DNA of 64,000 nt. Origin: Octopus bimaculoides. Taxonomy: Eukaryota. The DNA lies in contig NC_068999.1 in the NCBI RefSeq assembly GCF_001194135.2, forward strand, positions 48,032,534 to 48,096,533. The letters run 5' to 3'. Each line of letters begins with the position of its first letter. Position 1 is the first letter of the stretch. This document shows positions 754 through 62,689 of this stretch, in pieces. The notes below the pieces were generated by a model. The model ran no database searches, had not been told where the DNA came from, and saw only the letters and a program-made list of their open reading frames with translations. The position numbers were made by a program, and so were the translations under genes.

Positions 754-14117
<13,364 letters not shown>

Positions 14118-15360: not shown

Positions 15361-15544
15361 ACTGCTATGTCTCACCATAATCTAGATACATTTTGATTTT
15401 TTTTTATAAATGCTTTTATTTTTGGATGGGATATTGTGTTTTTTTTTTCTTTTTGTATAATCTGTAAAATTTAGCTCAAACATCCTGTGAAGTTAATTAT
15501 CTGAATGGTAAATGTAAATTTATTTTTATTTTGTGAAATAATTT

Positions 15545-16083
15545 CAACATGCTGTGTGAAAAAGTGCCACACCCTAACAGTTGAGGGAACTCGTGGAAGA
15601 GGTAGGCCCAGGAAGACCTGGGCTGCGGTGGTGAGGCAAGACCTTCGTACATTGGGCCTCACCGAGGCGATGACTACTGACCGAGACCTTTGGAAATGGG
15701 CTGTGCGTGAGAAGACCCGGCAAGCCAAGTAAGATCGTTGCCAGTGCCCCTGGACTGGTTCTTGTGCGGGTGGCACATAAAAGACACCATTTCGAGCGTG
15801 GCCGTTGCCAGTATCGCCTGACTGGCCTTCGTGCAGGTGACACGTAAAAGCACCTACTACACTCTCTGAGTGGTTGGCGTTAGGAAGGGCATCCAGCTGT
15901 AGAAACTCTGCCAAATTTAGATTGGAGCCTGGTGTTGCCATCCGGTTTCACCAGTCCTCAGTCAAGTCGTCCAACCCATGCTAGCATGGAAAGCGGACGT
16001 TAAANNNNNNNNNNGTCAAGTCGTCCAACCCATGCTAGCATGGAAAGCGGACGTTAAACGATGATGATGATGATGATGATGAT
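15545..16083 (+). mobile_element. RTE-clade LINE 3' end with (GAT)n tail
   Basis: VKKCHTLTVEGTRGRGRPRKTW...REKTRQAK* then the family 3'UTR ending ggacgttaaacgatgatgat. Confidence 0.85.
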
Positions 16084-36903: not shown

Positions 36904-39900
36904 TTCATATGTGTGTGTATATACATATATATATATACATATACACACATCCATGGTTCCTCCTTATGATGTCTTTAGCCATTGGATCCTATAAAGGAGT
37001 TGTTGAGGTAGCAAGCCATGAAACATGGTTGGAATTCTCTTACTGAAATTAGAGTGAGTGTAATATGCCAGTGCGTCTTTCATGCCATCAAATACTGTAC
37101 ATTAATATATTGAGATATAAAGGTGGTGAGCTGGCAGAATCATTAGCACACCTGACAAAATACTTCGTGCCATTTTATCTGTCTTTACGTTCTGAGTTCA
37201 GTTTCTGCTAAACTTGACTTTTGCCTTTCATCCTTTTGGGGGTCAATAAAATAAATAGCAGTCGAACACTAGGGGGTCAATGTTAACAACTTATCTCCTT
37301 CCCTCGAAATTGCTGGCCTTGAAATATATGTCACCAATTTCAAGTTAAAACATAATCTCCATTGATGATGACTTCTCACTTACATTTTTTTCTCAGCACA
37401 GAGGTATCTCTGCGTACTTGGTGTACTTGAAATTTACACTTGGAATTGATTAAAAAAAGGCCCTCTACTCCTAATGTAGAGATTCTCTCTTATATGATAA
37501 TGATGATGATGATTCCAAGGACATTGATAATGATGATTGTGATGATAACAAGACAACAACGACAATTTGAAGTAAACCCTATTCAAAATCATCACACAAA
37601 CCTCCTCTGGATGAGTCTCCATGTATTTGAAAGTGTTCTCATCAGCATCGATGATTCGATAGACATAATGATTCAGCTCCACGACAGCTCCGATGTTGAA
37701 GTCCTTGGCACAGTAATATTTTGTGGGTTCTATATTGAATTTTTGCTGATTAGGTAACTTGACTCGAGCTCGTCCGAGAAATATCCCAGTCTTCACACCT
37801 GCAATCAATGCAACAACAGCAAGACATTTAGCATTTGAAGCAGCCATATCCAGCCAAAATAATCTGCCTTTCTTATGTTCAAACTGGCCAGAGTCGGCCT
37901 CTCGTACCTACCCTACAATGTCCTTCTAAAAGTAAATAATCACATAATCAAAAAACTCAAAGCTATGAAATAATGCCTGGTTAATTAAAAGTCAATGTGA
38001 ATAGATAAGCATTATATTTGACAGAGTAATCCAAATGCTAACAGGTAAAAGAAAGAAAACAAACAGAAAAAAAGACCATAATAAAATAAGCATGCAAAAA
38101 CATTCACACACACATACATGCACATTGAAACACACATCATCATCATCATTTAACATCCATCTTCCATGTTGGCATGGGTTGGACAATTCAACAAGATCCT
38201 TTGAGATAGACGATGGCATCAAGCTCCAAAGTCTGCTTTGACAGGGTTTCTATGGTTGGATGCCATCCTAAAACCAACTATTTTTCAGAGAGTAAAAAGA
38301 AGTAAAGTAAGGTTCCTTCCCAAGTCTGTATGACTTGGGAAGGGCCGGTTTCCAAATTTCAGGGACTTCCTCAACCTATTTAAAACAGATTTAGATCTAC
38401 CCCTTACTGCTAAAAGGGCATCATCCCTATATAGACCACCAGTAAGAAGGGGAAAACTGGCTTTAATTTGTGACAGGAGGTATAGTCCGACTAAGTCTGT
38501 TACCTGTGCGGAATCCGATGACCCCATAGTAATATCAAAAAAACCCGTTGAGTCCACCCTTTGCCATTCAACTTTGTTGTATGATATAAGGGTCTCCCTA
38601 GCAGCTAAGATAATGTACCAACTTATAAAATAAAATATGAAATCCCTTGACTGACCTGAATTTGTTTCACCCTTCAAAGTAATTTGAATCGTATCATCTG
38701 CCAAATAGTAATTGATGATGAAATCTTGCTCAGAAACACTGCATTCCTTTGTTAACATTTTGGCTAGGAAACACAACACACGACGGTCCAAACCATCCTT
38801 GTCATATTTCAGAAACTGCATAAAGTTTGCTGGTCTTGACTGTATGACAATCTTGTTGCAGTTTTGAAGGGTCTCCTCTTCGTTGCCAAAACCATTATAT
38901 GGGGGACAAGTATACTGTATTGGCTCAATGAGAGTTTCTTTTTCTTTAATCGGAGTAAAATCAACTGGAAATAGAAGAAAAAGATATATTAAAAGAAAAC
39001 GATGTTAATTGTAACCACATGGTGTTCTCTGAGAGGTAGTTAATATAAGGAGAGATAATCATTCCTGCATAATAACTCGCAGTATTAGAAGTTTGAAATT
39101 TAACAGAGGAGCAAAGACAATGCATTGAATATTTCACACACACGCACACACACACATACATACAAACATACATATATGTTCTGGGTATGACAATATATAT
39201 ACATAGATTTGAACTCAGGCCATAAAGGGGTGTCACTAAGTAGTGCAACACATGGTCCAACACTCTACCAATTCAGCCATTCCTATACTGAATCTATACA
39301 GCCATTTTTATTGATGCTTTGCCAGAACATCGATGATCAGTAAGTGATTAAAAAAAACCCATTACATACCAATTCCATATTTTGTTCTGTAGAAATTCTT
39401 AGTGAACTCATCACAATCACAGAGCTTAAAGGGACGCCCATAAACACTGATGATGTTTCCAAATTGCAAATCTCCAGCTCCATAGTAAGGAATTGTTACT
39501 TCCCCTGTCTTTTTCACAGAAATAGAAGAAAGCATAAAGAGACTTTATTTAAAGAAAAAATACTTTTAGTGTAATAAAATGGTTTTTAACTATTAATTGT
39601 GAGATATTAATTGTGGATATATTTTCTCAGTAAACTTCCTTGGCAGTGAACTTCCCTGGTGGTAAACTTTCTTCACAGTGAATTGATGGGGGTGAACTTT
39701 CCCTATGGTGAATTGTTGGGAGAGAAGTTACCTGTAATCCCTAGGACTGTAGTGAACTCAGTGAGAAGTTAATTTTCATGTAACATAATCTAGGGCAAAT
39801 CAGCCTAGTGAACTCTTTTCCCTGCCCAAGCTATGCCACTTGGACAAATTATACTCAATACTGCAAGTTAACAAAACACTCATGGATTTTATTGTGCTTC

Positions 39901-42690
39901 CACTGTAGTATATATACTTACAGCTAAGAAAACCTGGGCCAATTTGTTAAGTGTTTTGGCTACAGGATTGTTTCTGTAGTGGTAGCATGCTATAAACCAC
40001 TGTGTTATCAATTTAATATGAAAGGAAAGAAGAAGGTAACAAGCTGACAGGATCATTAGCATGTTAGGGAAAATGCTTAGCAGTATTTTGTCCATCTTTA
40101 CATCCTGTGTTCAAATTCCACCAAGGTCAACTTTGCCTTTCATCCTGTCAGGAGTCAATGAAATAAGAACCAGTTGTGCACTGGGGTTGATGTAATCCAT
40201 TCCCCAAAATTTCTGGCCTTGTGCCAAAATTTGAATTCAATATGAAAGGAAGGAAGAGCCACAGTCTCCAAACTACAAGTGGAAGTACACATGTCCAGGG
40301 TGTATGCTTCACAAAATCATACCCAGGCAAGTAAACTTGTGTGTGGTTGTGGTGGTAGTAATGGAGGGGTGAGAAGGAGGAGAACATGGCAGTGGTGGTG
40401 TTAATGTTGGTGGTGGCAGAGATGATGATGATGATGATGATGAGGGTTGTGATGAGAGGTGAGGTTGGTATTGATGACGATGATGATGATGATGATGATG
40501 ATGATGACAATGACAATGAAGTTGATGAGGATGAGGGTGGTGGTAGTGAGAGTGATGTTGGTGATAACGAAGATAAATGATGACAGCTTTAACGCTAATG
40601 TCTGCAATACCAGCACAAATCTGAAGCTAAACAACACAAACCATTTAAAGAAAAATATTTGAGACATTTCATAAAGCAAGGAAGCATGTTTGAAAGCGGT
40701 GTCACCTGTAAACCATCATAAATGTATCGACCTTCTTTGTGCAGGGATCCAAAAACATTCAGTAGAGTGCGGTCACACACCTTTCCTGGAAAGTGGACAT
40801 AGTTTTCTCCCTGGGAAACAACAACATTTTAAATCATTACATATGTATATATGTGTGTGTGTGTGCTGGAAAATTATGTGTGTGTGTGTGTGTGACAGAA
40901 AGAAGCTAGGGGTATGTTTGTGTAACGGTAGTAAACTTGTGAAAACATAGAGATGTGGGTTCAACTCCCATGCATATAGACAACTCTACTTTTTTTCTGT
41001 CAAGGGCTTATATGCCCCAATATTAGACTATTTACCTTAGTCAATGCACGGGGATTGCTTATAAGCTTTAATCTTATAAAATATCATTATTATTATTATT
41101 ATCATTATTAATAGAATTGTAAAATTGATACCACTCACCAAAAAATTCACACACACACGTGTGTATACAATTTTGCATCTTTTCTACAATAATTTCCCAC
41201 AACAATTTTACAATATTTTCTCTATGATTTCCCACAATAATTATATAGATTTTTTACTGTAGCCCTCATGAGAATTTCAGTTTTCCTATTCTAATTTCCC
41301 TAAACAATTTTACAATATTTGCATTATTATTTCCCCACAGCAATTTTATAACTTTCCACAGTAATCCCACAATCATTTTATAGTTTTCCTACAATAATTA
41401 ATTTCTCAGTTATTCTACAATATTCCTATGACAATTTCCCCAACAAAAAATTTAGTTTTCTCACAACAATCCCACAATAATTATATAGATTTCTCACTCA
41501 TGAGAATTTTAGCTTTCCTATTATAATTTACCTAAACAATTTTACAATATTCGCATTATTTTTCCCCAAAGAAATTTTACAATATTCCCACTGCAATTTC
41601 CCCCACAACAATCTTAAAGTTTTCCCACAATAATTTTACTATAATTTCCCACAACAATTTCACAGTCTGACTGCAGTGCTCCAGTAAAACAATAAAAGAA
41701 CAAAAAACTAAAACAATGTAAGAAAACTGACCTTTGGCAGTTTGCCTCGTTTCACTAATATAGGGGACATGTCATTGCCACTGTTTGGAGAAAAGACCTC
41801 CCGGATTTCTATGGTGTCATCAGCTAAGAAATAGAACAAGGTGCAATTATGGACCACGCCGAAATCACTTGCTGTATCATCCCAGACACAAAAGAAACGA
41901 AGGACATGGGTGTCGTGTTCCAAAAACTGTTTCAGAGTGTCGATTCTCTTGTATGGACGTAATGGCAGCTGTTCCTCCTCTAACTAGAGACAAAACAACA
42001 AAAGAAAAACACATGGATAAGAATGGTGGAGATGGTGGTGGTGGTGGTGGTCGTCATCGCTAGTAATGGTGGTACTAATGGTGGTAGTGATGTGGCCATG
42101 CTGGGGCACTGTTGGGAAGGATTTTGCCAAGCAAATCAAACTCAATACTCTTTTTGTCCTTTTCAAGACCGGCACTTATTCTATTGGTCCTCTTGCTGAA
42201 CCACTCAACTGCATGGATTAAACAAACCGACACTAGTTATCAAGCAGTGGTGGGGGACAAACACAAGCACAAAGGCACACCACACATACATACATACATA
42301 CATACATATACAGTGGAAGACTGGGTCTAAAAATATTGGTTACCAGGAGACTAAGGGGGCCCACCCGCTACTATAAGGGGGCCCATCTGCAACTACAATG
42401 CTATCATTTAATCTTTTTCTTTTTTGTTAAAAGTATTCTTTTCAACTGTCTACTTTAAAGATTATAATTGTAATAATTAAATCATTTTAGAAAGCAGAAT
42501 CTTATCAGAGGCAGATATATTGGTATATCACTTTACCTGCCTATGATAAGATTCTGCTTTATAAAATGATTTAATTATTACAATTATAATCTTTAAGACA
42601 CAAATCGAAACAGCTGTAAGAGATTATGTTTATTTTTACAGTTAATAAATATACTTATTAATTGATTTATCTCCATTTTCTTATTTTTCT

Positions 42691-42729
<39 letters not shown>

Positions 42730-44032
42730 GTCAGCTAAATCTTTTAAATGCTCAGGGCTTCTATGAGTCTTGATACAGCCCTGAGTGGGGAACCAAAAGT
42801 ACTGAATTCTGACTTACAGTTTTGCGAAATTTTGTGTATGGATCTTCTGGTATATGGCCTGGATTTGGGATCTTCACACCAGACTTGTACAAGAACTTAT
42901 AAGTGAAGTGGTCACAGTTAACAATCTTGAAAACTTTGCCATAGAAGTTGATTTCCACTCCGATGTTCAAGTCTTCTAAAGAATAGAACTCGCTGGCGTG
43001 TGGTGATGGCTTTGGGATGCGATGTCTGCGAATAATTGTACCTGAAAGTAGAATAACAATGATAAAAATAAATAAATAAAAGAATGCAGTAATAATGTGG
43101 TTTTGAGTTCAGTTCCACCACATGGCACCTTGGGCAGGTGTCTTCTACTATAGCTCTAGACTGAGAAATGCCTTGAGTGAAAATGGTAAACAGAAACTGC
43201 GTGGAATACTGTTGTGCATATATATATATATATCTTCATAATCGTCATCAACAGGACTTATTCTTGTAGGCCTAGTACTTATTCTATCAGTCTCTTTTGC
43301 CGAACCGCTAAGTTACGGGGACGTAAACACACCACCATCGGTTGTCAAGCGATGTTGGTGGGACAAACACAGACACACAAACACGTACATATATACGATG
43401 GGCTTCTTTCAGTTTCCGTCTACCAAATCCACTCACAAGGCTTTGATCTGCCCGAGGCTATAGTAGAAGACACTTGCCCAAGGTGCCAAGCAGTGGGACT
43501 GAACCCAGAACCATGTGGTTCGTAAGCAAGCTACTTACCACACAGCCACTCCTACGCCTGTATGTATAGAAAATTTCATTAAAAAAATATCCATTTTTCT
43601 TAAAGTCATGAGAAAACAAAATCGGAGGCGGGCTTGAAAAAGACAAATTCTGTATTGTTCAATTTAAGAAACAATTTGGCAGTGACACCTACCTTGGTTG
43701 AGTCTACTGTTCTTTCTTTTAATATTGAATACTTCAATGGTATCATCTTCAAGATGGTAATAGATCATGCACTCGTGAATACGATACGTCTCTTCTTTTA
43801 GTTCCTGAACGGACTCTTGATAGTAAGCATTAAAACTGAGCACCTGTCGATCAAAAGCAACCCACGCTGGCATGTTTGATTGCTTGGCAAAACACAGTTC
43901 GGTGCGTACAGGTGGGACCTCCTGCTGTGGGTGAGGTTCGCCTCCGATGCCTGGCTTTGTGTCACCAGTGTAATAGAGCTCATTCTTAATTACTTGGAAC
44001 GACTGCGGCTTGTGGAATTTGGTCTTCCCGAT
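34158..44032 (-). CDS. EFHC2: EF-hand domain-containing family member C2 (3 DM10 domains + EF-hand region; RIB72-type ciliary microtubule inner protein); first coding exon not located
   Basis: complement join(43693-44032,42818-43041,41732-41983,40706-40810,39370-39508,38656-38964,37602-37798,36415-36749,34920-35012,34158-34413) = 2250 nt open, phases match. Motifs [31 protein letters not shown] x3, PPYNGFG. Confidence 0.92.
34920..35012 (-). CDS. EFHC2: EFHC2 exon (TGKIPATS...EELIE)
   Basis: tacag|a ... aa|gtgagt. Confidence 0.88.
36415..36749 (-). CDS. EFHC2: EFHC2 exon (FPQADIRK...SCLHEDRD)
   Basis: tccag|ttt ... cg|gtgagt. Confidence 0.92.
37602..37798 (-). CDS. EFHC2: EFHC2 exon (VKTGIFLGR...[16 protein letters not shown])
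   Basis: tgcag|gt ... gag|gtttgt. Confidence 0.9.
38360..38620 (-). mobile_element. Penelope-like element reverse transcriptase fragment in EFHC2 intron
   Basis: [14 protein letters not shown]...[23 protein letters not shown]...GLYRDDAL; matches the FDVTMGSxDGAExCELVGLY / LYRDDG signature. Confidence 0.78.
38656..38964 (-). CDS. EFHC2: EFHC2 exon (DFTPIKE...[11 protein letters not shown]...YYLADDTI...NS)
   Basis: tccag|tt ... g|gtcagt. Confidence 0.92.
39370..39508 (-). CDS. EFHC2: EFHC2 exon (TGEVTIPYY...[17 protein letters not shown])
   Basis: aaaag|aca (the neighbouring cag acceptor gives an immediate stop) ... g|gtatgt. Confidence 0.88.
40340..40580. repeat. (GAT/GGT)n low-complexity tract
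   Basis: Compound trinucleotide repeat in an EFHC2 intron. Confidence 0.9.
40706..40810 (-). CDS. EFHC2: EFHC2 exon ([21 protein letters not shown]...DGLQ)
   Basis: cccag|gga ... cag|gtgaca. Confidence 0.85.
41165..41665. repeat. Degenerate satellite-like tract (acaatttccc/acaatttt subunits) with about 240-bp higher-order duplication
   Basis: cccacaataattatatagat at 41231 and 41471, followed by parallel ctcatgagaattt...cctaaacaattttacaatatt blocks. Confidence 0.75.
41732..41983 (-). CDS. EFHC2: EFHC2 exon ([11 protein letters not shown]...LRFFCVWDD...KLPK)
   Basis: tctag|tta ... aag|gtcagt. Confidence 0.92.
42455..42596. repeat. Near-perfect inverted repeat (60-bp arms, 22-nt loop)
   Basis: 42455-42514 versus reverse complement of 42537-42596: 58/60 identical. 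Confidence 0.92.
42818..43041 (-). CDS. EFHC2: EFHC2 exon (TIIRRHRIP...[10 protein letters not shown])
   Basis: ttcag|gt ... act|gtaagt. Confidence 0.92.
43396..43560 (-). mobile_element. SINE family B copy
   Basis: Reverse complement of the 30811 element. Confidence 0.8.
43693..44032 (-). CDS. EFHC2: EFHC2 exon (IGKTKFHK...[11 protein letters not shown]...NQ)
   Basis: ttttag|atc ... g|gtaggt. Confidence 0.92.
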
Positions 44033-49005: not shown

Positions 49006-49248
49006 CTACAATTCAGTTTTGATCTGTGTTTCTTCTTTGTTGATGTTGTCGACAACACTGACAGCATCAGTGTTGTCTTTGGCAACTCGTATCATTATCT
49101 TGCCCATGTTCTTGTTCGCTTCCATTTTCTCATGTGCGGCATTGATCTGGTCTAGAGGAAAAACACTGTCCATAACAGGCTTCAAATGACCTCTTTCAAA
49201 GTGTGACAAAGTTTGCTGTGAGAAGGCTTCGACAAGTTGACCTTTATA
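49006..49248 (-). CDS. TP53I3: TP53I3 terminal exon (YKGQLVEAF...[10 protein letters not shown]...QIKTEL*)
   Basis: ttcag|tat ... TAG. Confidence 0.93.
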   Translation of the reverse strand, partial: YKGQLVEAFSQQTLSHFERGHLKPVMDSVFPLDQINAAHEKMEANKNMGKIMIRVAKDNTDAVSVVDNINKEETQIKTEL

Positions 49249-51993
49249 CTGAAATTACAAAAAAACAACAAGAGTTAAGGGTTAAGATAAGGTGAGAAGT
49301 TTCAAAAGACAACAACAAATTTAAAAAATCAATGATAATTAGTTAATAAATAAATAAATAAATAAATAAAAACCAATAGTTATGGTTTAGTTAAGAAGCT
49401 TGTTCTGTGGTCTTAGGTTCAATTCCACTCTGTGGCTTCTTGGGCAAGTGTTCTCTACTATAACCGTAGTTGACTAATGCCTTGTATATGAATTTGGTAG
49501 GCAGAAACTGTGTGGAAGCCTTTTGTGTGTGTGTGTGTGTGTGTCTACATGTATCTTTGTGTGAGTATTTGTCACCAGCTCCCTACTGCTTGATAACTGG
49601 TGTTGGTTTGTTTATGTCTAGATAACTTAGCAGTTTCACAAAAGAGACTGATAGAATAAGTACCAAACTTGAAAGCAGAGAAAAGGAAAACAAAACATTA
49701 GTACTGGGGTTGATTTGTTCAAGTAAAACCCTTCAAGGTGGTGCCCCAGAATGGCTGCCATCTGACTGAAACAGGTAAAAGATGAAACCTTTCCAGGATT
49801 GTAACTATTATCAGATAAGGGATCAGTCCCTTCTTAGCTCTACTTGTGCAAATTTTATTAATGTAGTTTAACACCAAGTTAGCCCTGATTAAGCCTGATC
49901 AAAGGCTTTCTATCCTATGACCAATGGGTCATTTTTGTTTTTTTACAGGTATAGTCTAGTCAACCATTAAATATGACTCGTTTTTCCATGTTCATTAGTA
50001 CTGTGATTCATACATAGACATTATGTGTTACTAGCTAAAATCTAGGGTTACTCACCTCATCAGTACGTGTCCTTAAAGTTGTGGCCATCAAACTGATTCT
50101 CTTCTTTAACAGTTCCAGGAATAAATTTCCATTCACTGACCGTCCACCTGTGAAAGAAATTAAATAGAAACATTGAGATGCAAGAATGGTTGTGTGGTTA
50201 AGCAGTTTACTTCCCAAACACACGGTTTGGGGTTCAGTCCTATTGTGTGGCATCATGGGAAAATGCCTTCTACAATAGCCCAGGACAAACCAAAACTCTT
50301 GTGAATGGATATGATAGATGGAAACTGAAAGAAGACCATTGTGTATATATATCCTCTTCATCATCTTTTAACATCCTTTTTTCTAGGCTGGCATGAGTTG
50401 GATGGTTCAACAGGAGCTAACAAGCCAGAAGGTTGTGCAGAGCTCCAATGTCTGCTCTGGCATGGTTTCTAAAGCAGTGTACTGGGTAATTCTTTTGTGG
50501 CACTGGCACTAGAGAGGATACCAAGTACTCACAAGACAAAACTCTTCAATGCAGTGGGACAGACTATTGAAGGATGTGAAAGTATGAAAGAAGAACTGGA
50601 AGAGGCATCTTACTGAAGAGGAGCGTGCATACATATTCTGGTGTCAATAAGTATTCTAAAACCAATATTAATCTAAGAATTTCTGAAGAGAAACAAGTTA
50701 TAAAAAAGACATGCAAATCAGCTTAATACTGCCCATAATGCAACAGGTCACAAATGTTTTTTATAGTGTGACGGCCATATTTTTCTTCAACCAAAAACTA
50801 AAAGCAAAATTGAACTCTGTATTTTTCTAACAACCAGAAATATCAGGTTATATGAATCTTTTAGAATTATATTCTCAGAGAGCAATACTTAATATTGGTT
50901 TAAGAATACTTAATTGCACATTTTGAAGTCCTAAATGATTTCTGTACCAAGATTACAACCACCCCAAACTAATTTTATACTTACCAAGAAGTCCATATAA
51001 AACCCAGCGTCCATCCATAGCAAGGCAATTAACATTCATCTCCCAGTAAACACCTCCAACACAATCAAGAATCAAGTTGACTCCACGACCTGTAAACATT
51101 GCAAACATTTATTTCTAAAGCGTTTTTGTCTGCACAAATAGTTTCAACTAGTCATTTCGTAACACCTCATTAAGCAAACATTTTGACATGTGACACCCGA
51201 GTTCACTAGATATATTGACTAGTGAGACATTCCTTCAACTAAATATGTAGACAAGTGACCTCCCTTAACTCTTTAGCATTTAAACTGACCATATCCAGCC
51301 CAAATATTTTACCTGTTTTATGTTCAAACTGGTGAGATCTGACCTCTCACCCCAACCCAACAATGTCACTCTAAAAATAGACAAACACATCATTAATATG
51401 CCAACAGAGAATGGAAAAATATAAAAATCACAACTGATCAAGCACACTAGAGGACAACACTATTAATCAAACATTCTGACAGGTGATACACACCTTTAAC
51501 TAAGCATGTTATCTGGTGACACCCTTTAACAAGGCATGTTGACTAATGAGACATTCCTTTAACTAGATATTTTGACAGGTGGCACTTGATTAGTGAGACA
51601 CCTCTAATTAACTGTCAAAAGTAAGAATCCAAAATTAATCTTGACTATCCCCTAGGGTAGCAATTTAAAAGCACACCTTCAGAAATGTTAACTCTGACCC
51701 TCTCACAAAATTACAAATGAAGGAAGGTAGTAGAAAGTAATCAAAGACACACCTTCAGTGAATTTCATCACTTCTTCTGAGAAATCAGTCTCTTTGTAAT
51801 TAAAGCCAGCTGAGGCCCCTAACTCAAGTGCCAACTTGATCTTGTCTTCTGAGCCTGCTGTCACAATTGCTTTGCCTTTAGCTAATGTCACCAACTGGAT
51901 TGCTGCTGTACCAACACCACTTGCTCCTGCATGAACCAGCACATAGTCTTCAGGTTGGAGTTTACCTGCAATATAAAGAAAACACTACTAATT

Positions 51994-52034
<41 letters not shown>

Positions 52035-55000
52035 CTGGCAAGAAAAGTGAGATCATGGCTGTAGCCTACACCAGTGTCACATAACCAGCCCATTGAAAAA
52101 GTACCTTTGNNNNNNNNNNTGAAAAAGTACCTTTGAATCGTCAGGCAACATGCTGTGCTTGAGGAGACCTATTGAGTAAAGTAAATCAAAATCAAATCAA
52201 ACGGAAATTATAGTTGTGGCCAATACCAGTGCTGGTGGCATGCAATAAGCACCATTCATGCATGGGTCGCTGCCAGAGCCGCCTGACTGGCTCCCCATGC
52301 TGGTGGCACGTGCAAGTGAGCACTCCACAGACACGTGTACCCTTAACATAGTTCTCAGGGATATTCAGCGTGACAAGGCTGGCCCTTTGAATTACAGGTA
52401 CAACAGAAACAGGAAGTAAGAGTGAGAGAGAGTTGTGGTGAAAGAGTACAGCAGGGTTCGCCACCATCCCCTGCCGGAGCCTCGTAGAGCTTTAGGTGTT
52501 TTCGCTCAATAAACACTCACAATGCCCGGTCTGAGAATTGAAACCGCGATCCTATGACCGCGAGTCCGCTGCCCTAACCACTGGGCTATTGCGCCTCCAC
52601 ACATGCATATACAGACATGCATATATAGGATGATTACTTCATTTTGCCAGATGAGAGCCACTTTATCTGAAACCTCTATACATCATTGGATTATAGTGAC
52701 ATACACTAACACAACACTTATGACACTCTTTAAATGTCCATTGTTAAACCATCTAGTGACAAGCAAGAGCAACCATCAATGCAACCATTGGTACATACAT
52801 ATTTACACACAAATAATATCTAGGTACATACATATTTACATAGGTACATACACATTTACACACAGACAATATATACATACATATACATACATACATTTAC
52901 ATATATATATGAATATACATTTATACACACACACACATGCACTTATTCATGAACAGATATTTGTAAAAGTGGTGTAATAAATATTTAACATATTTGTTTT
53001 CTTATATGTCATAATTCAGTTTTGTTTGAGTTTACAAAACAGCCACCCCCTTTCACCTTATAATAACTTTCCCTATCACCTCCTCCTCTACCTCAGAGTG
53101 AGCAAGGCCAGGTGACAGAGATAGATAAATTGTGAAGCAACAGCATTTCACAAAGCGAAACAGTATCATACCAATGCTTTTAATTATGCAATTGCGCAAT
53201 GCTTCCCTATAAGGACAAAATGTCTGTTACAGTTGTTTAACTTTGTTAGAACTGCTTGCTTTTCATACTCCCAAATTATTTTTTCTTTCTGACGTTTTAT
53301 TACTGGAATAATAAAAAAAGTTATTGTTTATCCATTACTGACAATTTCAAAAGATTTTATTACTAAGAGCAGTAACACTTTTATTACCGAATTTCTGTTG
53401 AAATACATAGCCTCTGTTTCAGTTAAATTTGAAATTAATCTAGAATTTATTGAAATAACTTCGTTGTTATTAACCTTTTTGCTACCATATTTCTGTTGAC
53501 ATATAATGCTTTTGTTTCAAATAATTTTTTAAATAATATCCAGCTGTAAAAACCACGCCAAAACTGACCTCACCTGTGCGAGTGCCACGTAAAAAGCACA
53601 CAGCCCACTCTGTAGAGTAGTTGGCGTTAGGAAGGGCATCCAGCCATTAAAACCATGCCAAACACACACTCAGGAGTATGGCGCGGGCTCCCGCCTGGGC
53701 GGCTCCTGTCAATCAACCCCAAAAGGACGAAAGGCAAAGTCGACCTCAGCAGAATTTGAACTCAGAATGTAGCAACAGGTGAAATACCCCTAAGCATTTT
53801 GCCCAGCGTGCTAACGTCTCTGCCAGCTCACTGCCTTAATAATAATGACAGTAATAATAATAATAACAAAAATAATAATTTATGCTAGAAACATATATTC
53901 TACAAAGCCTTAAATATGAATAAAGACGGTATTAAATTCACACTATTTTTCAAAGGTAATTTCTATTGCATTTTCTTAATTTGGTCTCCATTTCTAAAAA
54001 TTTAAACTGTTCATATATGGTAATTATGATACATGGCTGTTTGGTCTAGGTACATTAGTGTGTGTGAGGGCGGGGGAAGAGGCAACAATGAAAGTGGGTG
54101 GGTGGATGGGGGGGAAGATTTGTTTACCCATCATTAAGATAACAACATTTGTCTTTATCTCATGTCCACTAAACTACCTAACCACCACCAATCTCAATTC
54201 AGATATATAAATGAAAAACAAGTGCATTAAAAAATAACAAACAACAACAACAAAAACAACCGCAAAAGATATTCACATTGTCTGATTTTGTGACATAATC
54301 AACATTTATTTGTGCATTTATGTTACTTTTTTTGTTTGTTTGTTTGTTGTAGTCTTTTATATATTTTCCATTGTTTTACAAAGCTTTTTATTGCAAGCAT
54401 TTCTGCTTGTTTGTTAATTTGCAACAAATTCTGGATTTGTTAAACGAAAGATAAAAGGATATCTTTTATCTTTAATTTATTCCAGTCATTGGACTGCAGT
54501 ATCGCTGGGGCAATGCCCTGGAGAGTTTAGTTGAATGGATTGAACCCACTTGGTTATCTAGGCAGAGGGAAAAGCAAAACAAGGAGAGAGAGAGAGAGAG
54601 AGAGAGAGAGTGATCAAGAATGAGGGCAGAAACATAGAAAAAAATGTGAAAAACACAACATAGAGAATGAGAGGAAAGAAACACAAAGAATCTTAACAAA
54701 ATCCACTCCTGTATATACACACACACATTTATATATCACACACATGCTCACAACCTTACAAATTATTCACGCATGCACCCACACATATGCACATTTACAT
54801 ATCACATACAACAAATTACACACACACACACACTCTCTCTCTTTCTCAAAACTCAACAAATTATACACACACACACCTACATATTATATATACATCATAC
54901 ATACATTCATACCACACATTTATAATCATGAATTTATACAGGGAGAGAAAACAAGAAAGAAAAAATAACACACATACACACAAACAGTTAAAATCGTACA

Positions 55001-55611
55001 ATTATTTATACAGAAAAAAAGACGAAAGATAAACATGAGAACACTGAACATTGAACAGAAGGTGAAAGAAGAGAACATACCGACAAAATGTAACAGTTGA
55101 AAGGCAGTGAGCCAAACCTCTGGAATGGCAGCTGCTTCTAAGAAGTTCATATTTTCAGGCATTGGCATCACATGTTTAAAGTGCACCGCCACAAACTCAG
55201 CGTTTCCTCCACCTATAGAAAAGATGAAAAGAGAACAAACATTTGTTAACAAAGAATTTCTAGTATACACATTTATATATATATATACATGTGTGTGTGT
55301 GTGTGTGTGTGTGAAGACACAAGGCTCAGTGGTTAGAGTGTTGAGCTTACGATCGTGAGATTGTGAGTTCAGTTCCCAGACTGGGTTGTGTCTTGTGTTC
55401 TTGAGCAAGACACTTTACTTCACATCGCTCCAGTTCACTCACCAGTAGAAATGAACTGCAATGTCACTGGTGTCAAGCTGTATCAACCCTTTTGCCTTTC
55501 CCTTGGGTAACATCGGTGGTGTATTTCCATCAAATACTGAGCATCAACCCAATACATCCAGTGTGTATGTTCTTTTGACTTTTGTTGTTTGTTACTTTTA
55601 ATTTGCCTACT

Positions 55612-55649
<38 letters not shown>

Positions 55650-55813
55650 CACATATATATAATATTAGGGATAAAAATCCCAAATTACAGGTAAAAACTC
55701 AATTAAAATCAATTTATTAAAAATTAAAATTAAATTAAGTTTCACAGTATTAAATATATATATATATATGGATTTTCATCGATTAGTTCATGAACATTGG
55801 TTCTTTTCCCTAA

Positions 55814-55849
<36 letters not shown>

Positions 55850-58800
55850 CCCATTATTTAAATAGATATACAGTAAAAAAAAAAGGTGGGGGATGTACCA
55901 AAATTTATCCAGAAACCATGCTAAGCTCTGACCTAATGAGCTAGTAGGCTTGAGAGAATAACTATTTNNNNNNNNNNGGAATGTACCAAAATTTATCCAG
56001 AAACCAGGCTAAGCTCTGACCTAATGAGCTAGTAGGCTTGAGTGAATAACTATTTTTTTTTTAATAAGTGTATATTAACACACACACAACCATTAGAGCA
56101 TGGGCCCAGCCCCAAAAACACTAGGTCATGTGACTTCACACACACACATCATCATATAATTTTAACATCTACTTCTACGTGCTTGCATGGATCAGATGGG
56201 ATTCACTGAGGTAGATTTTCTACAGTCAGATGACCTTCTTGCCACCCAATGCTCACTTGTTTTCAAGCAAGGTAATGTTTTTGCATAACCAGACATGTTT
56301 TTAGGTATGATTACAAATTAGGGACTGTCTTTGTTCACATAACACTGACATTCATTGATAGTAACTATCCTGTGATGTCAGGACAAGGAGACACAAACAT
56401 GTACACATACACACATACAAACACACATATATATGCAACAAGTTTCTTTCACTTTCTGTCTACCAAATTGATCCACAATGCTTTGTTCAGCCCAAGTATT
56501 AGAAGCACCAAGCAGTGACGTATATAAATACAAGGTCATTACCAGCTCAAATATTCTTGAGATATATTCTAACTCATAAGAAAGTCATTCACTGCATTCT
56601 GTCTACAATGAGGAGACACACAGGGGGCACCCATGCCAGTGGCACATAAAAGAAGACACCCAGTACATTCTGTAAAGTAGTTGGCAATAGAAAGGGCATC
56701 CGGCCATAGAGACCAAGACAAAACAAACAACTGGAGTCTGAAGCAGCTCTCTAGCTTGCCAGCTCCAGTCAAACCATCTAACCCATGCCAGCATGGAAAA
56801 CAGACGTTAAATGATAATGATGAGAATTTTTTCCATGACAAAATGCAATGAATGGCTTTCTTACAGGTTCAAATATTTCTCAAGCATAGTAAACAGTAAC
56901 CAACATGTCTACTAAATCTAGTATTACCTTACTTACAATCTCACAATGTACAACGAATGTTTCCCCCCCTTGAACTTTTCTNNNNNNNNNNNNNNNNNNN
57001 NNNNNNNNNNNNNNNNNNNNNNNNNNNNNNNNNNNNNNNNNNNNNNNNNNNNNNNNNNNNNNNNNNNNNNNNNNNNNNNNNNNNNNNNNNNNNNNNNNNN
57101 NNNNNNNNNNNNNNNNNNNNNNNNNNNNNNNNNNNNNNNNNNNNNNNNNNNNNNNNNNNNNNNNNNNNNNNNNNNNNNNNNNNNNNNNNNNNNNNNNNNN
57201 NNNNNNNNNNNNNNNNNNNNNNNNNNNNNNNNNNNNNNNNNNNNNNNNNNNNNNNNNNNNNNNNNNNNNNNNNNNNNNNNNNNNNNNNNNNNNNNNNNNN
57301 NNNNNNNNNNNNNNNNNNNNNNNNNNNGGGTGACACGTAAAAGCACCCACTACACTCTCTGAGTGGTTGGCGTTAGGAAGGGCATCCAGCTGTAGAAACT
57401 CTGCCAAATCAGACTGGAGCCTGGTGTTGCCATCCGGTTTCACCAGTCCTCAGTCAAATCGTCCAACCCATGCTAGCATGGAAAGCGGACGTTAAACGAT
57501 GATGATGATGATGATGATGACATACATGCATGCATTCCTTTATACATACATGATGGCTGTCCACCCATGACCAAAGAAGTAAATCACTGACCATTAAGAA
57601 TATTGTGTATCAGATAAAATTATACTTTACCCTACTGGCTCCACTGGTGACTAATGAGTCCACTTGCCTGCATGACATGAAATATATGCCATGGATTATC
57701 ATCGAACATTCTCATTTGAAACTGCTAAAGGACCTTACCTATAATTTAGTTATTTGGCCATAGAACTGTGTAAAGTATACCTATTTTACTCTGATCCTGC
57801 CTTCATTTTTGACAAGCTGGAATGTAATAATATCCTCAACTGGGGATATTTCTTCATTTTTACATCTCCCTGACTTCTCACTCTCTGATGATGAGATACT
57901 CAGCTTATGGAATCCTTACTCAATCTCATGATCCACATGCTTGGATCAAGTTAAATGTTTGTGACTCTGATTCAGTCATTATTCTCATCTCTCGTGAAAT
58001 ATATCAGTCACCAGCTCAACCCAAGCAACAAGTGAACCTATACAACAACAACAACAACAATAATGATACTCACCTGCAAGGTATCTGCTCTGTTAATAGC
58101 ACTGGCCTGCACCTTTACAAGAACTTCATCGTCTTTTAATTCAGGAATTAGTACTTGATTCACATAGAGTACATCAGGTTCCCCTGGACTGTCAAAGTAT
58201 GCAGCTAACATCTCTGTCTTCTAAAAGAAGTGAAATTGAACATAATAATAATAATAATAATCAGTTACACATAAACAGCTATGAACTTGCATGTTGGTGA
58301 GTGTGCATACGTGTGTGTGTGTGCATGTAACAGCATTTCTTTCCGTTATGTATATTCAAAACTCAATTGTTTTCAAGTTTAATCCATCTTTTAATCCAAT
58401 TTTTTTCAGGCATGGCTGTGTGGTAAGAAGTTTGCTTCCCAACCACATGGATTCAGGTTCAGTTCAAATGTATGGCACTTTGGATAAGTAGCCTCTACTA
58501 TAGTCCTGAGCCGACCAAAGCCTTGTGAATGGATTTAGTGGACAGAAACTGAAAGCCTGTCATATGTGTATATACATGAGGGGTGCTGAAAAATTCCTGG
58601 CTTTGGGTAAAAGAAAATACAGGGTAAGTATGAGAGGCTGGATCTGGTCAGTTTGAACATAAAACAGGTAGAATATTTGAGCTGAATCTGGCTGGTTTGA
58701 TGATGACGGTGATGATTTTTCTATGTCTTTTATGTTTTATTTGTAACAATAATATTTCTAAGTTCGATTTCGTTTCAAGATCTTCTCAATCACATTGTCA

Positions 58801-60371
58801 AAATAAGCTGATAATAGTGAGATTATTACAAACCTGTTTCTGCTACCAGCCGCAGAAATACAGTAACAACTGTGCCTTTGTCAACACTTCAACATGAAGA
58901 TGAGACCAAGAGAGTTTTAAAATGTCAACAGATTTATAAGCAGTGAGTCAAAAAACTTGATCAACTGAGATTATCCAAGCAATTAGTATACAAAAACTCA
59001 CTCTGGAGTATTTAACCCTTTAGCATTGAGACTATTCTGTCACATGTAATGCTTATTTATTTACATCGTTTTGAATCAATCATGCGTTATCTCACAGTTT
59101 TGAGGTTTCAATGATGTGATTGTTTATTTTTAGAAAGACATTGTAGGGTAGGTGTAATAGGTTTGATCTGGCCAGTCTGAACATAAAACATGTAGAATAT
59201 TTGAGCCTGATATGGCCAGTTTAAATGCTAAAAGGTTAAAGATATAAAAACAATAAGCAAGGGAGATAATTCCAGTGAGATCAGTTGACTGATGTTTTTC
59301 GACATTATTAACAATGTAGATTGGTGTGGATCTTGGATTATTAAGCTTATACTTTCAAGTTTTATCAAATAAAATGTGCCAAGTCAATTTTGATCAAACA
59401 GGGCTTTGGTCAAGGCATACCAGCTGTGACCATCCATCTTTTTCCTTTGTGCTGATACACTCCAACACCAAATTATCCAAAGGTGTTCTTTTCTTTCTTT
59501 TTAAAGGTGGGGTTTAGCTGCTATTTCTAACAGGTTAAACAGCAATGTAAGAGCAACTTGCTGGCTCATAAGATGTACACATTAAACACTGGGGTGATAT
59601 CTAGATATGAACTATAAAAGAAAAAGATTTAAAAAAGGGAAAGAGAAAACATGGCAGAGATAAAGGAGAAAAATGATAGAGAAAGAAACAGAAGGAAAGT
59701 GGGTGGGGTGAAGATAAAGCAAAAGAGACAATATAAATGAAAGATTAAGAAAAATATACGAGGGAGAGAACGGGCAAGAAAGTGACAAGAACTATGAAGA
59801 GAAAAGAATTCTAGAAAGAAAGAGAATGGCTGAACTAAGACACAGTAAGCAAAGCAAAGAGATAAGATAAAAGGAGGCAGGGTAAACCGGCTAGATTTCA
59901 ATCACATTATAATATATCATACATACACACGTATATATGTGTATATGGATGTGTGTGTGTATGTATATTAGCTGTGGACATCAGCATGCCTTATGGAGAA
60001 AGCATGAAATTTTAATCAATTTCAGTAATGGTAGCAGTCACTGCTTGAATACACATTCTGCTTTATATAATTCAAGTTGTCAACACATACAGAAATATAT
60101 ATATATATATATATATATATACACTGAGAACCACTTCCCATTGTCAAACGGTGGTTGTCACGCACTGATGACGGGGCAATACCCAGAAACTCGGGTCCGT
60201 GTGTATCACGTCAGGCTGGAGATGGGAAAGATGACTTCCCTTTGCAAGTACTGATAGGACACAGAAAGTGTGTCAATAGGCAGCTGGAGGAGATGTCTTC
60301 CTGGGGCTACAAGCTACAGTAGCAACAACCTTTAAGGGTTAGCCACATTTAGGTGGCAAATATACTTCACG

Positions 60372-60421
<50 letters not shown>

Positions 60422-62435
60422 CCTTGTCAAAAGCACTGTACTGTTACACCAGCATTATCCAACGTGTTTTTTTTTATTATACGTTTTATTTAAGACGATA
60501 GAGAACTATATAAAGGTTTGGCTGGTGTTTCTAATAAATCATGCGGTCATGTAGAGGCTGCCTGGTTGTGGTTTGTTTGTTTGTGTAACACGAAGTCATC
60601 TTTGAGCAGATCTAAGGCATTCCAGCTTTGACCATTCCGTCCTTCGGTATAGCTAGTAATACCATGTTACCGTGTCTAAATGCATCCTTCCAAAAAAAGA
60701 CGGAGGTGGGAGGAGGGTGAAGGAAATTTGGCTGCTATTTCTAGCAGTCGAGCGCAAAGCTCAAATCATCATCTCGCCTGCTGGTCGTACGTGAAGCAGT
60801 CGAGCACAACAACAACTACTATTATTATTATTACTACTACTCTCCCTCCTCCTTGTCGGGTACTTAAGTTTCTAGCACTTGCTTAGCTCGAAGAATGGGG
60901 AAGGAACTATTCTACGGTAGGCAGAGGAGGGTATATGACAGACCAAAGTGCTTAGTTCTGTACACGGAAACAATAAATTCTTACACAGAAGCAAAACCCC
61001 AAAATTGAGGAGATGGGCAACGAATTAATCTTCTTCATAGAAATACAGGGTGTTTTATAAATATATTAGATTGATCTCTTGACTATTGTTGTAGGGCGGA
61101 TGCAATGTTGACCTTCGCTGGATTAGAACGCTAAACATAAATTTACCCAAGAAGTTGTCAAGTACTTTACATAATCAGCGAGGGAGCCTCTAAGTGGTTA
61201 CTTGATCTGCAAGAAATAGCAGTCAGTATCACTCTTAATCACACCCAGACGGAAGAACATTGGATAAAGGTACTCCTACATATCTGAAAAACGATGGGAT
61301 GCTCACGACCGGAATGTTTTTGGTCATAGATCTGCTTGATTATGGTGGCGCTGAGGTTAAAACAACATCTAGTATGTGGGAAGCTTTGTAAGATAAAAAG
61401 GCAACCACACACAATAAAGGAAGGATGTGTGTGTGTGTGTGTGTGTAATAAAACAAGGACGAGTCGGTCATTATCAGAATGCCTTTCAGCACAGGTTTGG
61501 TCTATCTCGTACAGGATTAGCCGTTAATCAAAATAAGCGCATGCTTAGGGCCTTTAAGGGAAGCAGGGGGTACCACAGAAATGATAAAGGATTTATAGTA
61601 CAAAAGGAATCGCTTTAGACATATTAAAATTATATTTGAAATGGATTCTATGATTATAATTTTGAAGTATTCATGGTGAAAACTGAAAAAAATGTATGGT
61701 TTATAATTGTTTATATTTTGAATTACGTATATAAGGGAGCACCAAAATCTTTTAAGTGCTTAAGGGCCTCTGTGGGTCTATCAGAGCTGACCAAGAGCTA
61801 AACAGTATTTAAATACACTAAAACAATAGCAGACTTCACCAGTTGCTCACGGTATCTTACATCGCTACATACAAACACACACACACACCCAAAGTATAGT
61901 ATGATGTTCGTGAGGGTTCCGGGTAGTTCTAGCACCCCAGTTTAGTTATTATCCGCAGTAATATCGTTTTTTCGGCTTACCTCAAAAATGCTTCAAAGTG
62001 GAGAATAACTGTATTCCCTTGTACGATTATATATAATTAGGAAAGTGTACTCGTTTCTATATTTTGTTGATTATCAATTTTCTGTTTCAACAGCCCGTTA
62101 TATATACTTATGCATGTATGTGTAGGTATGTAAGAAGATTTAAATGTGAATCATTTTACACTATATTCTCTCGTCATGTACTTGACAGACAGATAGATAA
62201 TATCGCACGTTTAAACTTCCCTTCTCTCTTTTTCTTCTTCCGTAATTTCTTTCATTCTTGTTTTTTTTTTTTTTATCTTTAAAGGTGGGCTGAGGATTAG
62301 ATACATCAAGGTACTTACGTTATTGTTTTCAGCGTGAGAAATGACAACGTTCAGTCTAAAAGCAGTGCAAAGAATGCACACGAACAAAGAGATCCGAGAG
62401 ATCAACTTGCAGTAGTAACGTAACAATAATATCAT
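49006..62435 (-). CDS. TP53I3: Quinone oxidoreductase PIG3-like (MDR / zeta-crystallin family) with putative N-terminal leader and C-terminal KTEL; one internal exon missing
   Basis: complement join(62319-62435,58074-58220,[missing],55081-55212,51753-51965,50985-51089,50056-50147,49006-49248). Motifs [62 protein letters not shown] are colinear with human PIG3 as recalled. Confidence 0.9.
50056..50147 (-). CDS. TP53I3: TP53I3 exon (GRSVNGNLF...TTLRTRTDE)
   Basis: cacag|gt ... gag|gtgagt. Confidence 0.92.
50985..51089 (-). CDS. TP53I3: TP53I3 exon ([12 protein letters not shown]...WVLYGLL)
   Basis: tacag|gt ... g|gtaagt. Confidence 0.93.
51753..51965 (-). CDS. TP53I3: TP53I3 exon ([18 protein letters not shown]...KFTE)
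   Basis: tgcag|gt ... g|gtgtgt; NADPH-binding AxxSGVG motif. Confidence 0.93.
52315..52600 (-). mobile_element. tRNA-derived SINE family D
   Basis: Head ggaggcgcaatagcccagtggttagggcagcggactcgcggtcataggatcgcggtttcaattctc with A/B-box-like motifs runs into a SINE body; relatives near 34640(-) and 55322. Confidence 0.75.
55081..55212 (-). CDS. TP53I3: TP53I3 exon (GGNAEFV...[18 protein letters not shown])
   Basis: tatag|gt ... g|gtatgt. Confidence 0.93.
56982..57328. other. Assembly gap, candidate location of missing TP53I3 exon
   Basis: N-run; other gaps at 8644-8700, 13497-13506, 16005-16014, 17017-17390, 31453-32021, 32688-33340, 45778-46259, 48064-48630, 52110-52119, 55968-55977, 62771-62780. 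Confidence 0.95.
58074..58220 (-). CDS. TP53I3: TP53I3 exon ([15 protein letters not shown]...AINRADTLQ)
   Basis: ttttag|aag ... cag|gtgagt; Met equivalent to the human start at 58211. Confidence 0.92.
59012..59239 (+). mobile_element. piggyBac-like MITE
   Basis: TTAACCCTTTAGCATT ... AATGCTAAAAGGTTAA; further copies 10643-10920, 20002-20217, 22896-23123(-), 37821-38049(-), partial near 51265 and 58625. Confidence 0.8.
60157..60203 (+). ncRNA. Type I (minimal) hammerhead-ribozyme-like motif, degenerate
   Basis: CTGATGA 60165-60171, GGG/CCC stem II, GAAA 60186-60189, 2-bp stem III closed by TCGG, GTC 60195-60197, partial stem I cacgca/cgtgtg. Confidence 0.55.
62319..62435 (-). CDS. TP53I3: Putative TP53I3 leader exon, signal-peptide-like ([39 protein letters not shown])
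   Basis: ATG at 62435, 39 codons, phase-0 aac|GTAAGT donor matching the phase-0 acceptor at 58220; CpG-rich context; no homology support. Confidence 0.65.
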
Positions 62436-62689
62436 CTAAAAGATAACAAACTGGAATGCCTGCATCTCAGGCCGTCTAATTTATTGCCTATCTGACTAAG
62501 ACAAATAAGTTCGAATCGAGTTACTTCCCCTGTTGTATTTTCAGAGGCAACACAATTTGTTAAAAAGATAGCAGTAAGTACTTTGACCTTCAGCTGTACG
62601 AGTTTATGGGGTACCCGTGTTTAGTGTTTAGCAGTGTGGTGTTCATTGCGGTGACTTTTTTTATTCAATTACATGAATGTATTGCAGCT

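Follow-up and report, generated by a model that had tools for sequence, protein, structure and literature searches.

The gene for the quinone oxidoreductase PIG3 (TP53I3) of Octopus bimaculoides is joined in frame to an upstream exon that encodes a hydrophobic leader, and its reading frame ends in the tetrapeptide KTEL; its main product is probably a PIG3 orthologue that is directed into the endoplasmic reticulum (ER) and retained in the ER lumen. The gene lies on the minus strand of a 64,000-nucleotide stretch of the O. bimaculoides genome (RefSeq assembly GCF_001194135.2, contig NC_068999.1, forward-strand positions 48,032,534 to 48,096,533), which is referred to here as the window and to which all positions given below belong unless another locus is named. 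Human PIG3 is a p53-inducible NADPH quinone oxidoreductase of the medium-chain dehydrogenase/reductase (MDR) superfamily, and PIG3 has been studied almost solely as a mammalian cytosolic, p53-induced enzyme linked to reactive oxygen species. Here we present the gene structure of octopus PIG3 and the features of its two ends, together with a survey of the same features in other animals.

The span in question, 62435..49006 on the minus strand (13,430 nt), is base for base the coding sequence (CDS) range of the RefSeq model XP_052830676.1 on CM046619.1, a chromosome record of Octopus bimaculoides (GCA_001194135.2); the model is labelled ‘quinone oxidoreductase PIG3’. Leader and KTEL terminus are both contained in this model and in the older model XP_014781274.1. 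The leader ATG at 62435, the end of the leader exon at 62319, its junction to 58220 and the KTEL end were all located at the positions given by the first-pass annotation of this DNA, and its claim that the two addressing features belong to one gene is borne out, as they are parts of the same annotated PIG3/TP53I3 CDS with consistent exon phases. The features of the gene are, in the direction of transcription:

62436..62465, minus strand: short upstream reading frame, ATG 62465, 9 codons, TAG 62438-62436 (sequence reading).
62319..62435, minus strand: leader exon, 39 codons, 117 nt (sequence reading, in-frame translation).
62318-58221, minus strand: intron 1, with GTAAGT donor and acceptor ...CTTCTTTTAG (cttcttttag) at 58221.
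62313..62318, minus strand: intron 1 splice donor, GTAAGT, with the same sequence in O. vulgaris and Argonauta.
58074..58220, minus strand: exon 1, 49 codons, 147 nt, with the KTE-MLAAYF start and the end NRADTLQ (sequence and alignment).
56982..57327, no strand: assembly gap of 346 N, covering exon 2 as judged from its absence from the window and from the O. vulgaris alignment.
55081..55212, minus strand: exon 3, phase 1 in and phase 1 out (mapped by sequence comparison).
51753..51965, minus strand: exon 4, with the glycine-rich cofactor-binding motif (mapped by sequence comparison).
50985..51089, minus strand: exon 5 (mapped by sequence comparison).
50056..50147, minus strand: exon 6 (mapped by sequence comparison).
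49006..49248, minus strand: exon 7, with the end of the enzyme domain, ...NMGKIMIRV (mapped; human PIG3 alignment).
49009..49083, minus strand: C-terminal tail, 25 residues, KTEL at 49020-49009, followed by the TAG stop at 49008-49006 (sequence reading).

Exon 1 opens with AAG ACA GAG ATG (KTEM) at 58220. The junction between leader exon and exon 1 is phase 0 to phase 0, and the join is in frame because both exons consist of whole codons (117 + 147 nt). The mapped exons 3-7 have GT/AG boundaries throughout and consistent phases. The full O. bimaculoides product should comprise about 394 residues.

By homology the gene is a PIG3/TP53I3 orthologue encoding an MDR quinone oxidoreductase, the enzyme part of which is ordinary, whereas both ends are not. 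With the PIG3 family profile TIGR02824 (NCBIfam, cutoff 296.8 bits) the proteins of Argonauta and O. sinensis score 376.7 bits and 373.2 bits, respectively; the O. bimaculoides RefSeq model scores 286.7 bits and stays below the cutoff only because the assembly gap deprives it of exon 2. The profile spans residues 50-375 only, so that leader and tail are outside the family domain. The best solved structure is that of human PIG3 (2OBY/2J8Z, E = 2.8e-120), which matches from the inner Met to ...IRV, whereas other MDR branches match far more weakly (CRYZ 1YB5, E = 5.5e-39; VAT1, 7e-34), and named database matches are PIG3 throughout. The stretches NRAD, LGLE, GGG, PE.WLT and FNYK show no change in the 16 sequences compared, rabbit among them, the GxSGVG motif is likewise invariant, and the glycine-rich NADPH-binding motif is retained in exon 4. 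Octopus and human PIG3 (2OBY, 2J8Z) share about 50% identity over the whole domain, the same Pfam domains, TIGR02824 and the cofactor motif, and the position of the human start Met is kept in the octopus protein. The human protein and all 114 vertebrate models compared start at or near this Met and finish just after GKI(V/I)xxxP, with neither a hydrophobic leader nor [KRH]xEL, whereas the octopus protein has a 42-residue N-terminal extension encoded by a separate exon and, at its other end, a tail of 25 residues of which KTEL is the last four.

The last exon ends in ...QIKTEL-TAG with the stop directly after L, so the motif is at the free C-terminus. The 25-residue tail extends past the end of human PIG3, which is alignable only to ...IRV. 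In the AlphaFold model of the Argonauta protein the enzyme core is confident, the tail (380-407) is predicted to be disordered (pLDDT 27-42) and the leader forms a detached helix of low confidence; on such a tail the motif should be sterically accessible. Other octopods have KAEL and KSEL ends, versus KTEL in O. bimaculoides. The view of the first-pass annotation that KTEL is a working ligand of the KDEL receptor is documented for AGR2, where it is the retrieval motif: it has lower receptor affinity than KDEL and allows some leakage, its deletion leads to secretion, and its change to KDEL leads to greater retention (PMC7519367). AGR2, a soluble ER-resident protein, combines an N-terminal signal peptide with the identical non-canonical KTEL read by the KDEL receptor (PMC7519367), the same addressing logic as is proposed for octopus PIG3. 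In contrast to octopus PIG3, AGR2 is a thioredoxin-like disulphide isomerase, and with no homology between the two the resemblance is in the targeting signals only.

Two database searches supplied 67 PIG3 sequences, either non-vertebrate or unnamed but invertebrate-like, in which the distribution of both features was surveyed. The survey includes cnidarians (Nematostella, Actinia, Oculina, Porites and Sanderia), molluscs (gastropods, bivalves and cephalopods), annelids (Owenia and Capitella), nemerteans (Lineus and Tubulanus), the flatworm Macrostomum, horseshoe crab, echinoderms, hemichordates and amphioxus (Branchiostoma); tunicates, cyclostomes, sponges and unicellular relatives are not part of it. 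An xxEL terminus conserved among orthologues, on which the first-pass annotation had made its reading depend, is present: a [KRH]xEL end was found in 62 of the 67 sequences and in none of the 114 vertebrate models, which reach from shark and coelacanth to mammals, the counts not being phylogenetically independent. The most frequent tetrapeptides are KDEL (9), KSEL (8), KEEL and HDEL (7 each) and RDEL and KQEL (5 each), followed by KAEL, REEL and HSEL (3 each), KTEL (2) and others. As a family-wide background, the motif occurs in 4 of 150 representatives of a library reduced at 50% identity, in which animal PIG3 sequences are merged into very few clusters. The tails that bear the motif vary in length and are otherwise unalignable, and a four-residue end that stays constant on such tails across phyla is strong evidence of selection on the motif itself. 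A PDZ-ligand or peroxisomal terminus was considered and rejected, as the conserved positions are a basic residue at -4, E at -2 and L at -1, with -3 free.

That the protein is mainly secreted, into haemolymph, mucus or another secretion, with KTEL and its variants acting as a weak and leaky retention signal, is very unlikely. The strongest canonical forms, KDEL, HDEL and RDEL, are found in many orthologues, and an NADPH-dependent enzyme lacks its cofactor outside the cell. Points that would fit secretion are the wide variation of the third-last position among orthologues, the reduced receptor affinity of KTEL and the partial secretion of AGR2, which has the same end (PMC7519367).

Two side observations were made among the vertebrate models. 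The model P0104 of the shark Pristiophorus ends in ...EETSDL and that of the shad Alosa, P0072, in ...SMSEEL; these ends could reflect decay of the ancestral tail or be fortuitous. In a set of bird and wallaby sequences (P0008, P0013, P0018-P0020, P0025, P0028 and P0050) many bird PIG3 models have a length of 456-510 residues and contain a profilin domain (PF00235); these PIG3-profilin models are probably annotation read-through fusions with a neighbouring gene.

The octopus leader consists of a basic n-region (R6, K10, R14) and an uncharged hydrophobic core of 12 residues, I15-F26 (62393-62358), with a top 9-residue Kyte-Doolittle mean of 3.09 in a heuristic hydrophobicity test; the n-region is unusually long. 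A candidate signal-peptidase site is S-H-A|E, with A35 at 62333-62331. The N-glycosylation sequon N39-K40-T41 spans the junction of leader and exon 1 and is present in all three octopods compared (O. bimaculoides, O. vulgaris and Argonauta). In O. vulgaris the frame of the leader is kept, 33 of the 39 residues are identical and the leader is joined to KTEML. The exon was missed in the O. vulgaris locus L003 because intron 1 is about 10.8 kb long there, and it was recovered via the 97-residue fragment gene P0335. The leader sequences of O. bimaculoides and O. vulgaris differ by nine substitutions, six non-synonymous and three synonymous, all of them conservative in hydrophobicity; with six of nine non-synonymous and the flanks equally conserved, this pair was discarded as uninformative about coding constraint. 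In Argonauta a frame of 45 codons is kept at about 68% DNA identity with indels of 3, 9, 15 and 3 nt, whereas those outside the leader frame are of different sizes; Argonauta also retains the GTAAGT donor, and its junction reads NN|K-T. To judge from these alignments, coding constraint on the leader is visible only in the Argonauta comparison.

The upstream ATG at 62465 is in the frame of the leader ATG, and its TAG abuts the latter. This TAG-ATG arrangement is common to O. bimaculoides, O. vulgaris and Argonauta, and a TAG directly 5' of the leader ATG in three species defines the start. A 2-nt insertion shifts the upstream reading frame in O. vulgaris. The sequence ttatcttttag|ATG before the leader resembles a splice acceptor, so a further, unannotated 5' exon may precede the leader exon, which would then be internal. 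The approximately 200 nt located 5' of the leader ATG (62436-62640, minus strand) share about 92% identity with O. vulgaris, equal to the exon, and this conserved segment may be a promoter or 5' untranslated region.

A signal-like hydrophobic core was detected, again heuristically, in 30 of the 40 invertebrate N-terminal extensions of at least 15 residues versus 2 of 12 in vertebrates. Of these 30 invertebrate models 28 also carry [KRH]xEL; the co-occurrence of leader and terminal motif in orthologues, proposed in the first-pass annotation as its own test, is thus found across phyla. In many extensions small residues occupy positions -3 and -1 just before the enzyme domain, as in Octopus (S-H-A|E), Nematostella (I-S-A|E) and both clams and Actinia ([AV]-M-A|S). 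A transcript contig from Logan (SRR22411499) contains leader and HDEL in one mRNA. ‘Leaderless’ Logan proteins were rejected as evidence of a cytosolic isoform in at least one case, L006, which has an in-frame MIRFLLPISCVFIRNLYV 5' of the called start; leaders are therefore undercounted in the survey. Since a KDEL-type end is read only within the early secretory lumen, its conservation argues that the C-terminus arrives there, for which a leader would be needed.

Several observations weigh against an ER-luminal product. KTEL, with T at the third-last position, is outside the strict PROSITE ER-target pattern, which we take to be [KRHQSA]-[DENQ]-E-L; the orthologue ends KDEL, HDEL, RDEL, KEEL, KQEL and REEL fit this pattern. 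About one third of the invertebrate models are without a leader, at least one such case being due to the start chosen by the gene caller. The octopus leader is atypical in its long n-region and an Arg after the hydrophobic core, the spacing of R6, K10 and R14 resembles an amphipathic, presequence-like helix, and the hydrophobicity test applied to it is a heuristic. Between O. bimaculoides and O. vulgaris the leader exon is no better conserved than its flanks. RefSeq takes the longest frame, and the presence of the leader in its models is therefore no proof of translation; the O. vulgaris model, which shares the intron read-through described below, may owe its structure to O. bimaculoides proteins used as a guide, in which case it is not independent.

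Some of these points would suit an upstream exon that is 5' untranslated and open by chance, with translation starting at 58211, a cytosolic protein and an xxEL end that serves another purpose or none. The equal conservation of leader and flanks and the default of gene predictors to the longest frame agree with it, as do the O. sinensis isoform X2, which begins MLAAYF, the invariance of the inner Met, and the leader ATG itself, which has a weak -3 context (T, versus G at the inner ATG) and is preceded by an upstream ATG. We nevertheless regard an untranslated exon as quite unlikely. The Argonauta frame is kept over 45 codons with four indels that are all multiples of three, signal-like extensions occur at the same place in unrelated phyla at the frequencies given above, and the [KRH]xEL ends of the 62 sequences, on tails that cannot be aligned, have no known cytosolic role. 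Furthermore, any ribosome starting at 62435 makes the leader, because no stop is encountered before 58211.

The composition of the leader bears on a further alternative, in which it is either an uncleaved signal anchor (type II, with enzyme and KTEL luminal) or a mitochondrial presequence. R6, K10 and R14 are placed at i, i+4 and i+8 with no acidic residue before E36, the Argonauta leader has an anchor-like uncharged core of 16 residues after a 21-residue n-region, and the leaders of Sanderia, Gigantopelta X2 and Mytilus galloprovincialis X2 are basic and weakly hydrophobic; the medium-chain dehydrogenase family includes mitochondrial members. These features would be compatible with an anchor or presequence, but the conserved [KRH]xEL makes sense only in the secretory lumen, a core of 12 residues falls short of a typical membrane span but is usual for signal peptides, and small residues at -3 and -1 are found just before the enzyme domain in many species. 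We consider this alternative unlikely, and with a signal anchor the enzyme would still be located in the ER lumen.

For an ER-luminal PIG3 the following course is proposed as the simplest one; the AlphaFold model of the Argonauta protein described above is in keeping with it. Translation would start at 62435, and the first approximately 35 residues would act as a cleavable signal peptide that directs co-translational translocation and is removed at A35|E36. The mature enzyme would begin a few residues before the old start Met, with glycosylation at N39-K-T being possible. By homology the fold and the cofactor site are unchanged, and the enzyme would be active in the lumen. KTEL would be exposed at the free end of a flexible, acidic tail of about 25 residues, and molecules that escape to the cis-Golgi would be captured by the KDEL receptor via this motif and returned in COPI vesicles. 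Some secretion is possible, because KTEL binds more weakly than KDEL.

The inner Met at 58211-58209, the counterpart of the Met that starts vertebrate PIG3, is unchanged in every aligned orthologue (15-16 species); a secreted mature protein needs no Met at this inner position. The O. sinensis isoform X2 begins at this Met, and pairs of X1 and X2 isoforms with different N-termini exist in several species. In O. bimaculoides no ATG in any frame is located between 62435 and 58211. Translation from 58211 may be a parallel route; with less certainty than the luminal form, a cytosolic isoform that starts at this invariant Met is probably produced as well, either through leaky scanning or from an alternative 5' exon.

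The phase-0 end of exon 1 does not match the phase-1 start of exon 3, and in every relative a further stretch is present between them. This exon 2 encodes about 45 codons, RRGLYPIPPGAS...KVMCLCN in O. sinensis and O. vulgaris. Its sequence was not found in the window by tblastn (word size 2, E up to 10), and a misplaced exon elsewhere in the window was therefore ruled out and the gap indicated. In O. vulgaris exon 2 has a length of 136 nt (L003 9881-10016), and in the colinear alignment window position 56981 equals L003 10032, 15 nt past that exon. As 136 nt correspond to 45 codons plus 1 nt, the frame from exon 1 to exon 3 is restored. According to this alignment exon 2 sits inside the 346-N gap, and the gene is intact in principle and incomplete in the assembly. 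Both RefSeq models of O. bimaculoides contain a mid-gene error, filling the missing exon with translated intron 1 sequence, an artefact to which the newer model adds an 18-residue insert. The O. vulgaris annotation has the same read-through and divides the gene between two products, a ‘hypothetical protein’ of 97 residues and CAI9736980.1 of 269 residues, despite the presence of exon 2 in the genome itself.

Two further gaps of 10 N each, 52110-52119 and 55968-55977, are intronic. About 60 nt on each side of the latter (window 55906-55994) match one and the same O. vulgaris segment (L003 11333-11392), and with this short overlap duplicated on its two sides the gap has the appearance of two contigs that were joined without being merged. 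A dispersed repeat with minus-strand frames occurs at 15471-15941, 28433-28783, 53485-53646, 56572-56868 and 57328-57449 and gave no Pfam match. A copy of it at the upper edge of the exon 2 gap probably explains the assembly break there. In Argonauta hians (L001 11745-11792) the end of exon 1 is partly repeated about 100 nt downstream of the real exon 1, in intronic sequence.

A DM10-domain (EFHC-like) gene is located at about 36400-43873 on the minus strand, with DM10 matches at 37434-37847 and 38285-38821. It lies about 5.1 kb downstream of PIG3 on the same strand, and the same neighbour in the same orientation is found in O. vulgaris and Argonauta hians, which shows that synteny is conserved in the three octopods. 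On the plus strand the window contains 3' exons of a dynein heavy chain gene at 3137-3472 and 10957-11325 (Dynein_C, E = 1.1e-31), with a dynein D6 P-loop region at E = 4.8e-6, which is under the gathering score. Scans of the window for tRNA genes and with Rfam delivered no matches.

The first-pass annotation had described octopus PIG3 as re-addressed to the ER, a polarity that the survey reverses: leader and [KRH]xEL are general in non-vertebrates from Nematostella to Branchiostoma. ER addressing is probably the ancestral animal state, as read from this distribution; most of the non-vertebrate phyla surveyed retain it, and jawed vertebrates would have lost it and been left with the cytosolic form alone. 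The suggested link to ink and luminal tyrosinase chemistry has gained no specific support, since cnidarians, annelids, echinoderms and amphioxus share the architecture; a role specific to ink or tyrosinase was rejected as the explanation, animals without ink having the same design. A general role in luminal quinone or catechol handling is possible.

To our knowledge, very few NADPH-dependent reductases of the ER lumen have been described. 11-beta-HSD1 together with hexose-6-phosphate dehydrogenase forms the NADPH system of the vertebrate ER lumen and is a precedent for a luminal NADPH-dependent reductase. In contrast to the octopus protein, which from its sequence would be a soluble medium-chain quinone reductase, 11-beta-HSD1 is a membrane-anchored short-chain dehydrogenase acting on steroids. 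CRYZ (zeta-crystallin) and yeast Zta1 are NADPH:quinone reductases (EC 1.6.5.5) with the same ortho-quinone substrate class (PMC7822847); they belong to the same superfamily as PIG3 and differ from the octopus protein as members of a more distant subfamily that are cytosolic and without secretory signals. A literature search, with most subscription journals outside its scope, delivered no paper on an ER-targeted or KDEL-bearing PIG3/TP53I3. The sequences and models are already public.

We put forward, as a tentative proposal, that ancestral animal PIG3 may have been dual-localised, with ER-luminal and cytosolic forms made from one gene by way of the conserved inner Met, that most invertebrates may still run an unrecognised, NADPH-dependent quinone reduction in the secretory pathway, and that this was lost in jawed vertebrates. 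If so, the loss would have occurred when PIG3 became purely cytosolic and p53-linked, and the luminal enzyme might keep the catechol/DOPA groups of secreted proteins, or other quinones, reduced. If the ancestral and widespread form is ER-luminal, mammalian PIG3 would be a derived, relocated remnant. A conserved luminal quinone reductase would, if true, mean that both a quinone or catechol substrate and a supply of NADPH exist in the ER lumen across invertebrate phyla.

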